A stretch of 64,000 nt of DNA from Dimorphilus gyrociliatus. Taxonomy: Eukaryota > Animalia > Annelida. The stretch spans positions 620,001 through 684,000 of the forward strand of contig CAJFCJ010000006.1 in NCBI GenBank assembly GCA_904063045.1. Reading direction: 5' to 3'. The notes beneath the pieces were generated by a model. The model was given only the letters and a program-made list of their open reading frames with translations, had not been told where the DNA came from and made no database searches. A program made the position numbers and the translations under genes. Shown one piece after another: positions 13,703 to 28,457 of this stretch; position 1 is the stretch's first letter, and each line of letters begins with the position of its first letter.

Positions 13703-16700
13703 ATGAACATTTTGGATGCTTTTTTTTGTATTCTTTTAACTATCGTCGTTCAATCTATGACGACAGTTTTATTGCCTAAAATATAAGAGAAATTTCTTAT
13801 CTCTGTAATTAAGTTTGTTTGTGAATATTTATTTGGACGTTTAAACAAAGTAGGTCGTATACGTGTATAGAGCCCCGGTATATACTGTATAGAGTGTGTA
13901 CAGTCTGACACTATTGCTATTAACTGCAGTTGCTCTCTACTCATAGATTTTGCAACTATCTTTTTCTTTAGACTTTCTAACATTATTTTCCCGCCTACGT
14001 GAATCTTACATAGGCGGGATAATAAATTTCATTGACCCACTCGAGTGACATTTTGATAAGACACAAATTGTCAGGCTTGAGCTATTAAATTTCCTCCTAT
14101 GTTGAACAGATTACATTTTATGAAGTCATATTTAACAGGTTAAAGCGCAAATAAGTAAAGACACGACATCAATTTACCTAGACGATGAAAGTGGAGATGG
14201 GAATGGAAGTGGTAACATTCCTGAACAACCTGCAGAAGAGTTCCGTAAGAAATAGTTCATAATTATGTTGATCGGTTCTTAAATTCTGATAATTTATAAT
14301 AGCATATTATCGTCTGATAATGTGTTGTCAAGGAACGACTTGGAGAGAGGAGTATAGAAATAGAACTTCTGCACACTTCGAAGCTTTAGGATCGAAGATA
14401 TCACAGAAGATTGACAAAATATTTTCAAGTCAACTGCGAACGTCTGATTACTATTTAAAAGTGCTGCAGTTTCGGTAGGCCCGCGTAAATTTTCAAGTTT
14501 TTATATTTGCTTAAAACTCTTTTACATTGATAGGGTTGTAAATTACCGAAAGCGAAAGAGAAGGTAAAAAAATTGCTTTATATCATTTAACATCTGTAAG
14601 ATATACATCGTGTATACATCAAGGTCCCTTGACTCTTGTCAAGTTCTTGCGACTGTTGATGTACGAATTTTGGACGAAAATAAAGAAGTGGCAGAAGCTT
14701 TATTAAATAAAAGCCTCACAAACTTCAAGTTTTATAAAGCTCACCAACCAGGTAATCCATGTTTCCATTAATATTTTTCCATAACTGTCTTTTTGTGTTT
14801 TTTCTGGTATCAAAATACTAATACTTAATTTGTTAACCATTTCTCCACAAGAATCTGACGCGTGAAGTTAACTTCGCAAAATTTAAAATAATATATTTAA
14901 TATCCAACTTACATAAAAATTTCAGATTCATAGTAGGTTCACTAAAATTTTTTCATAGCGGATTCAAAGAAAGAATTTGATTGATGCCTAAAGAATGAAC
15001 TAATCTAACTACTGTGTAACCAATTTGCGTTAGTCTGAGACAGGATGTTTATTTAACAATTCGAGTAATCGATTACTAGAAGAAAGTTTCCTTACAAAAA
15101 ATGATATTATTTTTACACCCTCTAATCAAACTAACTCTGAAGACCAGAGATTTTAATTATAATATAATATTAATTTGGAAATTCTTCAGTTGCTGACAAT
15201 CCTTGCCCTGATTCAATAGGAAATTACTTAAAGAAGGGGGAAAATATTTCCTTAAACACAGAAAACAAAATACCAGCTTTAACTATTCCGTCGAAATTAT
15301 CAGTGAAATGTAAAGGATTACTTTCAGGCATTTCAATGCTTGTCATCAACAAAAGTGAATTAACAGATGTTAATGGTCTCATTTATCTTACTATTTGGAA
15401 ACCGATATATAATAAAACCGTATCCAATAAGACTCCCTCAATGTACAAATTGTTAGACAAGATAAACCTTCGAACAGATATTATTCATCAGGAAATTCGA
15501 CCTCGAATACTCGTCTTTAAAGGTTATATGATTGGCTTTGTCTACTCTTTGAAGAAGAAAAAATATTTCCCTTCTCTACAAGTGGGAAAGCTAAGTAACG
15601 ATGAAAAGTCTGAAATATTAGTGCATCAACACTTCTACGCGGATTATTTGGTTGTAGGGGAACAAATAAATTCAACTCAGTTAGACCACAAATTCCTGGA
15701 ATTTTATGATAACAAAAACGAGAAGAAATATATGCAATATATTTTTCAAGCGCACATTGGTAAAAAGATATGTTCAATCAGTATTTGTAAATTGATATTG
15801 TAATTATATATCCATCTATTTATTTTGAATGGATATATTCTATTATTTTCCGTTATCATAGTAGTCTTTGTTATCCACAAGTTTGAAAAGTAATTAGATT
15901 AAAATTGACTCTATTAAAGATAGCATTACTTTTCAATTCGACAGATCCGATACCTTCTACAATTTCACCCTTTTGTGAGATTTGGGAAAGACGATGTCCT
16001 AACGGAGCGTGTGTCCCAAGAGACTTATATTGTAGCCAGTGTAAGGTGGAAAGAGAGTGCAGTTATCGTACGTAGATTTATATTATTTAATGATCAAATG
16101 ATTAATTACCATTAATTAATGTATCATCGGTAGCATGTCAAAAATTCAAGGATTTGCAACAAATTAATGATCGAACAAAAGCTAATTCATCTCAGACTCT
16201 ATTATCACTTCTTCCAAATATACAATTATACGAAAATTGTGATCGTCTGTACATAGCACAAGCTTTTATAGGATATTCTTTTAAAAGTGATAGACCTAAC
16301 CATGAACTCTTTTTGACTGTATGGAGAATTATTGAGGATAAAAAATCACTGAAATTGATAAGTAAAACTAAGCTTGCTGAGAATAAAAAAGCAAAATATT
16401 ATGAACTAATATCAGGAAGTTATATTGAGTTTAATAAACATGATTTGATTGGTATTCTTCAGAGTAAATCAGAAATAAGTGATCAGGTTTCATCCGGTAT
16501 TGCTTTCGTTGAAGCTGATGATTATGAAGTCTTTGCATACGATATTCCTGAGGTTGATAGTTCTGAACTTGAAGAAGGCTTTGAAATTCTTCGAAAAATG
16601 AAAAAATCAATTAAAAATAGAAAATATGACATTCAGATTTATTACGAGTCGAAAATTGAGATAGGATCGACTCCAAGACCTTGTTATGGATGTGGTATGC

Positions 16701-19700
16701 TAATACTTTATCTATCTTTAACCAATTAAGCATTTTCCTATATAAAAAAATCTTACTTTACAGCATGTGGTGGAAGTGCTGCCTGTCGAAATGGAGGGAA
16801 ATGTGACGAAGATAGTACTGGACGATTTATTTGTTACTGTGCTGCTGGATTTGAAGGAATCACCTGTGAAATGAGTAAGTTTACTTTGTTTTTGTGATCA
16901 CACCAAAACAGTTGTACTTTCAGCGAAGCAAGAAACCACTACTACCTATCCTTCATGTGGAATAGGTCAATTTTTATGCTCAGATGGCACATGTATCGAA
17001 AATTATCTTTTATGTGATACTATTCCCAATTGTTCAAATGACGAGGTTAATTGCCGGGACTTGAGTACGTAATCATCTTTAATTTTTTGGAAAAGCTGTA
17101 GCTATGCTTTTTTAGATGAATGTCGAGAAAACATCTGTTATAATAAAGGAAAGTGTATGGAGATAAAAAACGGAAAAGTTCAATGCTCTTGCTATGATAA
17201 TTTCTACGGAGAACGTTGCTCCAATGGTTGATAATTACTAAGATGATCTTAAATAATATAATATTTATAATTTAAATAACTTTTTAATATCTTTTATGAT
17301 TTCCTTTTCAGAGTGTTCAAATTTTTTATGTAGTGATCATAGTGACTGCATATCAGACAGCCTGCTTTGCGATGGGTACAATGATTGTTCAGATGGGAGT
17401 GATGAGAGAAATTGCCGTAAATAAATTTTAATTAAAAGTATAATTTTTTAAGAGTTCTTTCTATCAATTAGCTTCAAAACCTTCATGTCGACCTGGTGAA
17501 TTTAAATGCCAGAATAATATCTGCATTCCAAATTTTAAGCTTTGTGATGGTGAAAACAATTGCTACGATGAAAGCGATGAAAGGCAGTGCCCGATTTTGA
17601 GTAATTATCTCAATTGTTTTCAAAAAGCTTATTTAAAATATTTTACGTTAAACAGACAACTGTTTGGAAAACATCTGTTATAATGACGGAAAATGCCTTT
17701 CTGTACAAAATGGAATCGTTACGTGTGAATGCAGTGATCGGTACTTTGGTTTACGATGCGACAGAGGTAAATCATTGAATATCAAAGCTTAAGTTAATTT
17801 TAATATGAAGTAACAAATACTTTAGAGTGTCCAGACGAAGAATTTCTTTGCACAGACAAAAGTAATTGTTTACAAAAATCCAAGATATGCGACAGGTTGA
17901 CACAATGTGATGACAACAGCGATGAATCAAATTGCTGTGGGTTTAGGACATTGTATATCTTTTCTTGTTCTATAAAAATTATTTAAATATAGCAGATACG
18001 GTTTTATATGCCCGACCAAAACTAGTTCGAATCTTAGTCGGAGAGGATGTTAGATTAGCTTGTGAGGCTGACAAACAATATAAAGATAAGAAAATAGAAT
18101 GGGTTAAGTCACCCAATACTATAATAGAAGATGGTTATGATTCTCGAATGACATACGAAGAAGGATATTTGGATATATTAAACGCAAAAGAAACTGATTC
18201 TGGATTTTACTTTTGTCAATTTAAAGACAATAAACAAGTGAAATCAGATGAATTAGAATTAATTGTTGAGTCAGGTATTTTAGTTTAATTAATTAGAATA
18301 ATTTTTTTAGATTTTTATTTGTGTCCTGCTAGATCCTACTGAAGTTTGTCTTAATGGAGAATGTGGTAGGATTTAAAGAGTAGAGGGACTGTCAAAATAT
18401 TAATTTTTTTTTGTTTTTTTTACAGACACATTTTGCTCTCCTAATGAATTTAAATGTGTATCTGAGTCCACTTGCATCAGTATTGTCTACAAATGTGATG
18501 GTGTTTTTGATTGCTCAGATGGATCTGATGAAATATGTCCTGAAGGGGCAAGAAAATTTAATTGCTCCAGACTGACAATACCTGAGGCTAAATGGGTTAG
18601 TCTCACGTTGAAAATAAAACCATTTTATATTTATATTTTTTTAATAGTGCGACTTTAAGCAACACTGTATACGCTCTGAAGATGAAGAAGGATGCAAGGA
18701 ACCATTTATTGTAAGCCATCCGAAACCTACGTCACAAAAGATTCAAGAGGGCGCAAGTATACAACTAACATGTGAAGCTAGGGGAGTTCCTCCTCCAGTT
18801 ATCATATGGCGTCTTAACTGGGGTCATCTGAGAAATTCAACATCAGTCAAACAGTCATGGATGAGATTGCCTAATAACGGTCTTAATTTAATTAAATTAA
18901 AATTTTCAATAAATAATGTAACCATATTTTAAAATTTAGAGGGAAGTGTAGGTAAATTAATTATTCAACCTGTAACTGAAGAAGATGAAGGAGCCTATAA
19001 TTGTGAAGTTTTAAGCAAATTATCAACAACTCCACATATCAGTGATGTCGCTCAACTCATCGTGATACCATCAAAGCGTTACTGTGATGCTTTCGGATAC
19101 TTCAATGAAGTTGCAAACAGTAAAGAAGATTGCATTAGGTGCTATTGCTCTGGTGTAACTCATAATTGTAAAGGAAACGAACGATTTTATACTTTTGTAA
19201 GTCAGATTAATTTGAGTTGATGAAATTTATCTCTTTTTTTTAATCTATTATTTGAAGATAACCCCAGCCAGTAATGCAATTCGGGTCATGAACTTTGATA
19301 GGAACGAGTACGTCAGGGATTCTTTAATAACAAGAACTGACAATACCAATCAACGATACACGTTTAACGAGCAGTTTTCTTTCTATGATAAAAATAGATA
19401 TTACTGGTCTTTGCCAAAGCAATTTTTAGGAAATAAAGTAAGGGCTCTAATTAATGCATTTGATACTGACGAGTGTTCAAAATTAATAGTTAAAGTCGTA
19501 TGGATCCAGTGTTCAATTTTCTTTGAGTTATTACCCTGAAGATAAGCAAGATGTATTTAAAAATTCTCCTGACTTTATAATACAAGTATAAAAGGCAAAT
19601 TCCATAGTATCTGAATTCTAAGAATATTTTTTAAAGGGTAAAACTTATAGTTTGTATAACTATTTTAATGAAAAAACGAAAGTTCACAAAAAAAGAATAA

Positions 19701-25700: not shown

Positions 25701-28457
25701 TAATTAAATTCGAATTTCTTTTCCAGTTTGAGTCAAATTAACGCGGATGGCGATTTAGTGTTTGGCAGATTTAAAAGTGAATATGCAGGAAAGTATGTTT
25801 GTACTGTACAAAATAGCGAAGGACAGGATGACATGACTTGGTTGGTAGAAAGAGGCGAGAATCAACAAGTTTTTATACCCTTTTTCAATGAGAAAGATGA
25901 CACATATCTGGCTTTAAAAGCACCCTCAGTTAAAAGATCTCTGAATTTTAAAGTTGCATTTAAATCTTTCGATTTATCAGGGATTCTCCTGTTTCAAGGA
26001 GATGTCGGTAAAAAATCTGATTACTTTAGCTTGAGTCTGGACAATGGACATGTCACTTTTCGCTACTTTTTGGGCAAAGTACCGGTTACAATAAAATCCA
26101 ATGATAAGATAGACCTCGACAAATGGTATGTAGCATCCATTATAAGACCGGAGCGATCCAGCTTCGGAGTACTAAGAGTCGAAAATGAAGTATTCAATGG
26201 AACCAATACCATATCAAGTGGTATGGAAACAACCAGTCCATTGTTTCTTGGAGGTATTCCTTCGACAACAAATGAAAATGTCAAAAAGTTTATTAATTAT
26301 CACAAGAACTTTAACGGCGTAATCAGCTATTTATCATTCAATCAAAAAGAATTAAACATGCTAGACTACGAGTACCTAAACATGGTAGAAAACTATGATA
26401 CGTGTTCAAGAGATGCTCCGTGTGGAAATGGAAAACAGTGTGAAAATGCTAATGTTAAATATGGCGCTTTATGCTTCAATTTAGATTTTGAACATTGTAG
26501 AGGTATTTTAGATTTTTTAGATCTAACAAAAAAAACCGTGTTTTATCTCATCACTTAGATACTTGTCCAGCTACTCATTTATGCCAGTCTCAACCTTATT
26601 CTGATTATCAGTGTAATTGTAAATTGGGTTTCAATGGAGAAACATGCGAGAAATACACAAAGACTATACCATCTTTCAATGGTCATTCTTATATGCAAAT
26701 AAAGCATCCTCAACAAAATCTAAAAACTAATATTTCACTCGATTTAAAACCTACTTTTCTTACCTTACCATCGATTATATTATTTATGACGGCTAACAGA
26801 GTAAGTTATTAACGTACTTAGCTTGAATTAACAAAAAAGCAATGCACTTTAGGAGAATACTAAAGACTACCTGTATATAATGTTGGATACAAATGGCTTT
26901 CTGATCTTTGTCTATTACCTTGGACATAATGAAGCAATATTGTCATCTAAAGTACCACTTTCTGAGAATGAATGGAGTACTATTCAAATTATCAGAAGAG
27001 CCAATCTTGCTTCCCTATATGTTAATGGCACAATTCATGACGAAGGTACCGTCTCACATACAGATGTTAAAAATAAAAATTAACTTTTATTAAATTAGGT
27101 GATTCCGGGAAAACTTCGAAAGGATTAAATGTCCTTGATACCCTATGGTTAGGCGGTATAGCGCGAACACAGACCTCACCTAAAGATCTCTCAGGATTTG
27201 TCGGATGCATAGATAATGTAGGATACTGTAGCTGAAAACTTATATTTGTTTAGAGTATTTATAAATTATTTTATGAACAGCTTCAATTGGATGGAAATAA
27301 ATTCGATTATAATCTTAACCTGATAATTAATAGCAAAACTGTTACCCAATGCAATGAGAAGTCTTTATGTAAGGAATATATTTGCCAGAATGGAGGAACA
27401 TGTATTGAAGACCGACCAAGAATGATTGCTAAATGCTTATGCCCAGAGCTATTCACAGGTAATTGAAATTAAAAAGTAATACAGCTTATTTTGAAAATAT
27501 CCGCAGGCGAAAAATGTGAAAATGCTGTTAATATGTGTGAAATGAATAGTACGTTATGTGGTAGAGGTACTTGCATATTTTTAAACCCGGGATTCAAATG
27601 TGATTGCGGGGAAACAAGGAAATATGGAGCATTCTGTTCACTAGGAAAATATTTCAGTAAGAGCCTGCATGTCAGCAATCATGGTTACTTAGTTCTCAAA
27701 GATGACGTTATCAAGCCCTATTTAAGAGATATAGTAAGTACAATTTTGTCAATTATACATTAAAAAAATTTACAATATATATTACAATTGATTATTTGAA
27801 AAACAGATGGTGGTAAGTGGTGTGAATTGCAGTTTTTTTTAGTTAGAATTCCACTTAGCCTTTCTATCATTGAATAAATAAGACAATAAATTTTAATATT
27901 GTAAGTAAAATATTTATATTTCTATAGATACGACTAAATATAAAAACTAAGAAGACTTCTGGTTTAATATTCTTACAATATCAAAAAAATGGGCCTGATT
28001 TACAAGCCCTTTTGTTATTGGATGGAAAATTACAATTTCACTACAATCTTGGATCAAATTTGACTATTGTGAAGTCAAATATGTTCCTAGCCAATGGTTT
28101 AAAACATTCAATAGTAATTGAAAGAAGTGGAAAACAAGTTTTTGTAATAATAGATGATAAGACTGATTCATCAGACATTTCTCCCGGAAAAATGCAAACT
28201 TTGAATACAGACAGCGAGTTTTACTTGGGTAGTTCCTGTAAAATATTTTAAGAACTTACGTATTTTAACAAATTTTTATCTTTACAGGTGCTATTCCTAT
28301 GAGTTTAAGGAGTAAAATAGCAAACTTCACGTATTATTTTGACTATTTTGATGGCTGCATTTGGGATTTAAAAGTCAGCAACAAAACAGACACGATGGTT
28401 GATATAAACTTGAATGATTATGCTATAATGGAACATAACGCTTGGACTTGTATATAA
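13703..28457 (+). CDS. HSPG2: Perlecan (basement-membrane HSPG): SEA, LDLa/EGF, Ig, 3x laminin B + LE, Ig array, 3x LamG + EGF; ~50 exons; start codon tentative
   Basis: Signal-like [18 protein letters not shown]; GAG-site region [11 protein letters not shown] (14181-14213); SEA-like exons; perlecan signature [19 protein letters not shown]; three L4 domains ([38 protein letters not shown]); three LamG; stop TAA 28455-28457. Confidence 0.88.
27807..27812 (+). other. Candidate 6-nt microexon (ATGGTG, Met-Val) in perlecan LamG3
   Basis: Sequence aaaacag|ATGGTG|gtaagt sits inside an otherwise 194-nt phase-0 intron (27734-27927), far longer than the local ~50 nt norm. Confidence 0.55.

Follow-up and report, generated by a model that had tools for sequence, protein, structure and literature searches.

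A 64,000-nucleotide (nt) stretch of the genome of the annelid Dimorphilus gyrociliatus (contig CAJFCJ010000006.1, positions 620,001 to 684,000; the whole stretch is called the window below, and positions are counted within it) carries on its forward strand a gene which, as read from its sequence, is a perlecan with two additional large modules. These modules, encoded by exons that we term A and B, resemble no described domain and, as far as seen, appear to be restricted to the lineage of this worm. The two exons, together with a possible extension of the first, are the following.

15190..15759 (+): exon A, 570 nt, 190 codons, phase 1-1, encoding Cys5, Cys40, a single Trp69 and five N-glycosylation sequons
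16134..16694 (+): exon B, 561 nt, 187 codons, phase 1-1, encoding Cys1, Cys35, a single Trp63 and a C-terminal C-x-x-C
15760..15786 (+): possible but unproven extension of exon A, 27 nt, up to a second in-phase (phase 1) donor (GTAAAT following 15786), which would add a Cys-containing tail

Both exons are flanked by an AG acceptor and a GT donor (...ttcttcAG and GTaaaa for exon A, ...atcggtAG and GTatgc for exon B) and are translated without a stop, exon A from 15192 into 189 amino acids and exon B from 16136 into 186, in agreement with the first-pass annotation of this DNA, which had placed two large exons of these lengths at these positions. The surrounding stop-free stretches comprise 209 codons for exon A and 207 for exon B. 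In this AT-rich window (about 32% GC) a stop is expected from the local base composition with a probability of 0.08 at each codon, and the chance of an open frame this long is about 3e-8 per exon; elsewhere on this strand, from 12.9 to 29 kb, frames of at least 150 codons occur only in verified immunoglobulin (Ig) and laminin G (LamG) exons. A codon-usage log-likelihood model trained on eight other coding stretches within the window yielded positive in-frame values per codon for exon A (+0.14/+0.26) and exon B (+0.28/+0.27), resembling those of the verified exons, while the values were negative in both shifted frames of the two exons and in the flanking introns. The introns beside exon B measure 66 nt and 69 nt and those beside exon A 438 nt and 185 nt. 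Removal of exon A, exon B and the degenerate LDLa exon that separates them would leave a single intron of 2012 nt in a gene whose other gaps between coding segments are mostly shorter than 300 nt. Judged by these properties, A and B are in our view genuine protein-coding exons within a perlecan-type gene. The possibility that they form a separate nested gene was rejected, since both lack a start codon that is in frame and followed by a signal peptide.

The remaining coding segments of the 5' part of the gene are listed below.

13704..13766 (+): putative first coding exon from sequence reading, with an ATG and a hydrophobic signal peptide, phase 0 end at a GT donor
14139..14244 (+): acidic exon with two Ser-Gly sites, phase 1 end, without Pfam match, likely glycosaminoglycan attachment region
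14303..14474 (+): first part of the SEA domain, with the GT donor following either 14460 or 14474, Pfam SEA E 3.3e-4 at model positions 2-47
14601..14751 (+): second part of the SEA domain, acceptor 14601 or 14624, phase 1 end, alone without Pfam match
15945..16067 (+): degenerate LDLa exon, six Cys, phase 1-1, Pfam Ldl_recept_a E 0.2 at model positions 3-24
16764..16874 (+): EGF exon, phase 1-1, directly 3' of exon B, Pfam EGF/EGF_2 E about 3e-4

A consistent chain of AG/GT boundaries and phases leads from the ATG at 13704 through the acidic exon, the SEA domain, exon A, the degenerate LDLa exon and exon B to the EGF exon, and every boundary from the end of the SEA domain onward is in phase 1; the phase 1-1 structure that had been claimed for both large exons is thus reproduced. 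Their proposed placement between the SEA and LDLa regions also holds, with the SEA match upstream and EGF and LDLa modules downstream, as does the statement that they flank a degenerate LDLa exon, since the six-Cys exon lying between them fits the first half of the LDLa model only. The glycosaminoglycan attachment region was assigned by the rule of a Ser-Gly pair in an acidic context. With 21.2 bits the SEA match stays below the gathering cut-off of 26.4 bits, the reason being that each of the two exons sharing the domain was searched separately. Two donor/acceptor pairs, 14460/14601 and 14474/14624, are available for the intron within the SEA domain, with the same downstream frame in both; the latter pair gives a more SEA-like join (...L-Q-F-R-S-L-D-S...) and has weaker splice signals. 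The degenerate LDLa exon likewise has two in-phase donors, one following 16040 (GTAAGG) and the other following 16067 (GTACGT), and the use of the former would drop the last two Cys residues.

Further downstream, five LDLa exons scoring above the Pfam gathering threshold, along with I-set/Ig_3 exons, make up the cluster typical of domain II. EGF modules alternate with the LDLa repeats in this region (approximately at 16764-16874, 17120-17228 and 17690-17789). Domain III may be represented by an EGF_laminin match with E 0.0018, which is below the cut-off; Pfam Laminin_B was not matched by any exon fragment, and Laminin-B-like motifs (Y-W-x-L-P ... L-G-N and S-x-Y-G-G) were recognized by eye in three places. 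The array of domain V begins with Laminin_G_1 and Laminin_G_2 matches (E about 1e-16) at 25704-26555 and continues with more LamG/EGF exons. This predicted domain content identifies the host gene as a compact perlecan. In the published architectures of human and Trichoplax perlecan the LDLa repeats directly follow SEA (PMC4398486), which agrees with the earlier statement that canonical perlecans contain no module of this kind.

A word-based search retrieved a single relative of exon A, its orthologue P0001, a 227-residue open reading frame (ORF) from the Logan assembly of a related genome. It is 70% identical to exon A across all 189 residues without any gap and runs slightly past both exon ends into intron sequence, which is the expected behaviour of an ORF caller applied to eukaryotic DNA. 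As a yardstick we used P0006, which shows 62% identity over 228 residues to the LamG1 exon of the gene and 70% identity to the next EGF/LamG2 exon; the longest contig is 67,047 for P0001 and for P0006 alike. The identity of exon A matches that of the LamG and EGF/LamG exons, which argues for ordinary constraint and for a functional exon, and by this measure exon A appears to be conserved as well as the canonical perlecan domains. The intron upstream of exon A seems to be alignable to the relative only with a frame shift, an observation based on very few residues. At 26505-26560, where our gene is compared with P0006, the single ORF of the relative spans LamG1/EGF into the next EGF/LamG2 exon, so that the short intron near this position is either lost or open in frame in the relative.

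Searches for a family to which the modules could be assigned were consistently negative. In Pfam, exons A and B and P0001 produced only chance-level matches up to E 10, and NCBIfam only one short chance match, for exon B; the PDB searches by phmmer and with profiles of A+P0001 and of A+P0001+B were empty. Exhaustive phmmer comparison of exon A with 1.84 billion representative proteins returned only P0001 and four bacterial proteins with HYR repeats. The bacterial matches (E 1e-10 to 3e-16) were rejected after a local re-run, in which each of the four proteins gave 8-12 stretches, scoring 3-10 bits apiece and confined to residues 6-58 of exon A; the low E-values had arisen because many weak repeats were summed. 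No loci similar to exon A were found among the JGI metagenome contigs scanned. In the 77.9-Mb assembly of the worm itself (349 contigs), protein, profile and DNA searches revealed no third copy of A or B, and since each is present once in the genome they are not a transposon or repeat. The A+B profile has a weak match on another contig, at C7:1261636-1261947 (E 0.49, 15 bits), within an open frame of 587 residues, which is probably due to chance. The literature on annelid perlecan yielded nothing relevant. The earlier claim that the modules match no named domain is therefore upheld for both exons in Pfam, NCBIfam and the PDB, and for exon A in the 1.84-billion-protein search; by sequence comparison A and B belong to no described domain family. 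The attribution of the domain to invertebrates at large, on the other hand, was too broad, the sole relative coming from one related genome, and as far as seen the modules are restricted to the close kin of the worm, probably the Dinophilidae.

An alternative is that A and B are extremely diverged representatives of a known fold, either LamG or another jelly-roll, or an Ig-like or HYR-like sandwich, whose identity was blurred by fast evolution and AT bias. The length of about 190 residues and the small Cys-rich neighbours would suit such an origin. In both exons I, L, Y, V and F are abundant and form an alternating hydrophobic pattern that suggests beta strands, although this is a reading by eye and not evidence for the beta-sandwich suggested by the first-pass annotation; visual inspection of exon B further pointed to an acidic segment with many Ser residues and a probable helix. 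Exon A contains a G-L-I-Y-L stretch similar to the G-L-I-F-L of LamG3 of the same gene, its N-terminus resembles an HYR junction, and its nearest named clusters in the ESM Atlas are beta-sandwich families (scores 0.86-0.89). Against this stand the lack of a match to Laminin_G, HYR or any other extracellular-domain Pfam model at E 10, the empty PDB searches and the composite nature of the HYR matches, none of whose stretches exceeded about 10 bits. LamG identity in particular was rejected, since BLASTP comparisons with the LamG exons of this gene gave E of at least 0.1 with no consistent register, in addition to the missing Laminin_G match. We regard a disguised known fold as a serious possibility, yet a rather doubtful one. 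Closer ESM Atlas neighbours of exon A, unnamed sponge and bacterial clusters at 0.94-0.95, were not accepted because their mixture of kingdoms suggests a composition effect; exon B was near no cluster. An internal duplication into two Ig-sized halves was found in neither exon.

The first-pass annotation had further read the two exons as copies of a single domain with a common pattern. MAFFT aligns them at 23% identity and recovers the register it had proposed. The N-terminal Cys pair is spaced by 34 residues in A and by 33 in B, the only Trp of each exon lies within L-T-[IV]-W, 29 and 28 residues past the second Cys, respectively, an I-G motif follows 46 (A) or 43 (B) residues further on, and K-N-x-K precedes the last strand in both; these shared motifs are collinear in the MAFFT as well as in the Smith-Waterman alignments. 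In shuffle tests p was about 0.015-0.02 for A against B with BLOSUM45 and 0.007-0.02 in all four settings when exon A of the relative (P0001) was compared with B, so that p reached 0.007-0.02 in six of the eight settings overall, while three other, unrelated exons taken from the gene as controls attained z of 1.7 at most. Read through its donor, exon A would continue into a tail of which 7 of 10 residues are identical in P0001 (G-K-T-I-R-S-I-C-I-C) and which can be aligned with the C-terminus of exon B; the donor at 15786 could serve as an alternative 5' splice site or be what is left of a longer ancestral exon. From the collinear motifs and these statistics we lean slightly towards the view that A and B are homologous.

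On the whole we favour, as a reasonably probable interpretation, that A and B are real perlecan exons encoding orphan extracellular modules, which most likely are old tandem duplicates. The following results weigh against it. BLASTP comparison of A with B gave E 0.068, hhalign produced no collinear alignment in the proposed register, hydropathy cross-correlation showed no peak at the proposed offset, and with BLOSUM62 the shuffle tests gave p of 0.06-0.2; moreover, it is the N-terminal part that yields the best A-B shuffle statistics, and this part was picked after the data had been seen. The language-model 'recognition' value is protein-like for exon A (2393) and low for exon B (1802), and single-sequence AlphaFold2 models reached a predicted local distance difference test score of only 31.2 for A and 38.8 for B. 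An orthologue of exon B was not retrieved by the word search, which covered called ORFs of 102-325 residues only. Finally, the exhaustive search brought up no annotated D. gyrociliatus protein with exon A from a collection that holds the annotation of this genome.

The poor pairwise scores, the absence of collinearity in hhalign and of a hydropathy peak, and the unequal language-model values are what would be expected if A and B were real but mutually unrelated, being independent orphan inserts or fast-evolving linkers which share their length and phase by chance. Such a coincidence would, however, have to account for the Cys spacing and the L-T-[IV]-W, I-G and K-N-x-K motifs occurring in the same order, for the p values of the independent comparison of P0001 with B, and for the resemblance of the read-through tail of A to the tail of B, and we consider it unlikely. 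What stands of the proposed common pattern is thus the register, the Cys spacing, the length and the phase; its statistical support is weak and varies with the matrix and with the A-type sequence compared, the shuffle p running from 0.2 down to 0.007.

The missing annotated protein bears on another explanation, namely that A and B are conserved ORFs which are rarely or never spliced into the main perlecan messenger RNA (mRNA) and represent skipped cassettes or relics. All the neighbouring exons are phase 1-1, so skipping of exon A, the degenerate LDLa exon and exon B would keep the frame, as had been pointed out from their symmetric phase, and the introns beside exon A are the longer ones. The same collection does include the single-exon kinase of the window (in NCBI and UniRef); either the deposited perlecan model omits exon A, or the collection leaves out the window's own proteins, in which case the negative result would lose its force. 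Inclusion of A and B in the mRNA is favoured because A is conserved like the canonical exons, both exons are coding-like in their codon usage, B sits between two typical mini-introns and the alternative is an exceptional 2-kb intron. We hold it improbable that the two exons are generally left out; as real perlecan exons they may be constitutive or cassette exons.

With respect to their origin, the exon shuffling into perlecan that the first-pass annotation derived from the symmetric phase would require a donor gene, but no other copy was found in the genome or, for exon A, among the 1.84 billion representative proteins. As no source gene is visible, the modules may just as well have arisen in situ or have diverged until their origin is no longer recognizable. 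It is conceivable, though we remain somewhat sceptical, that A and B together constitute a previously undescribed extracellular domain family, which arose or diverged in dinophilid annelids and was tandemly duplicated inside perlecan.

If the exons are used as we propose, each of them would encode one hydrophobic-rich extracellular module of about 190 residues with N-glycosylation sequons and a predicted disulfide near its N-terminus (Cys5-Cys40 in A and Cys1-Cys35 in B), and the two would most likely stem from an old tandem duplication of a single unit that was followed by strong divergence. The modules would sit at the boundary of domain I (the heparan-sulfate/SEA region) and domain II (the LDLa/EGF/Ig region), where they may act as a rigid, glycosylated and disulfide-stapled spacer or as an interaction module. 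They would lengthen and stiffen the N-terminal arm of the protein and thereby hold the heparan-sulfate chains off the LDLa/Ig core; one may also speculate that they bind a partner, in line with the ligand-binding function suggested by the first-pass annotation.

Placozoans and humans share a conserved perlecan domain order, as do the lineages between them. If domains I and II are indeed separated by a functional and conserved insert of about 420 residues, this would mean that the core basement-membrane toolkit accepts lineage-specific modules, and that it does so even in an otherwise shrinking genome. Should A and B indeed represent a novel family, a highly conserved basement-membrane protein would have acquired a lineage-specific N-terminal arm beside its heparan-sulfate chains. 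If they share a new fold, they would enlarge the extracellular-matrix repertoire by one domain family and offer a tractable case of in-place domain birth or of extreme divergence. The present weight of these considerations is modest, as their basis is one genome and one relative.

Compared with known systems, the modules and the gene around them show partial resemblances at several levels. Some 35 N-terminal residues of exon A resemble the repeat junction of HYR and HYR_4C (PF02494, PF23237; P-x-L-T-[IV]-P ... C), whereas the rest of the exon does not align and membership in these families is not borne out by any Pfam HYR match up to E 10. Laminin G domains (PF00054, PF02210) are of a similar size, about 180-190 residues, and in perlecan and agrin they alternate with small Cys-rich modules; exons A and B differ from them in showing no profile or pairwise match and in having their single predicted disulfide at the N-terminal rather than the C-terminal end. 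The exon at 15945-16067 shares with LDLa (PF00057) its six Cys and the fit of its first half to the model (C-x6-C-x4-C-V-x5-C), but its C4-C5-C6 spacing is shortened, the D-x-S-D-E calcium cage is absent and its E of 0.2 is far below the gathering score, so that it has neither the canonical six-Cys spacing nor the acidic calcium cage of a true LDLa repeat.

At the level of the whole gene, the likeness to human HSPG2, Drosophila trol, C. elegans unc-52 and Trichoplax perl appears to extend from the SG-rich N-terminus with the putative SEA domain through the LDLa/Ig region and the putative laminin EGF/laminin B region to the Ig repeats and the C-terminal LamG-EGF array. In contrast to human perlecan, in which the LDLa repeats are contiguous, the worm gene has EGF modules interleaved among them, and it has far fewer Ig repeats. 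It differs from the perlecans of human and Trichoplax alike in the two modules of about 190 residues which, together with the degenerate LDLa exon, are inserted between SEA and the LDLa cluster.
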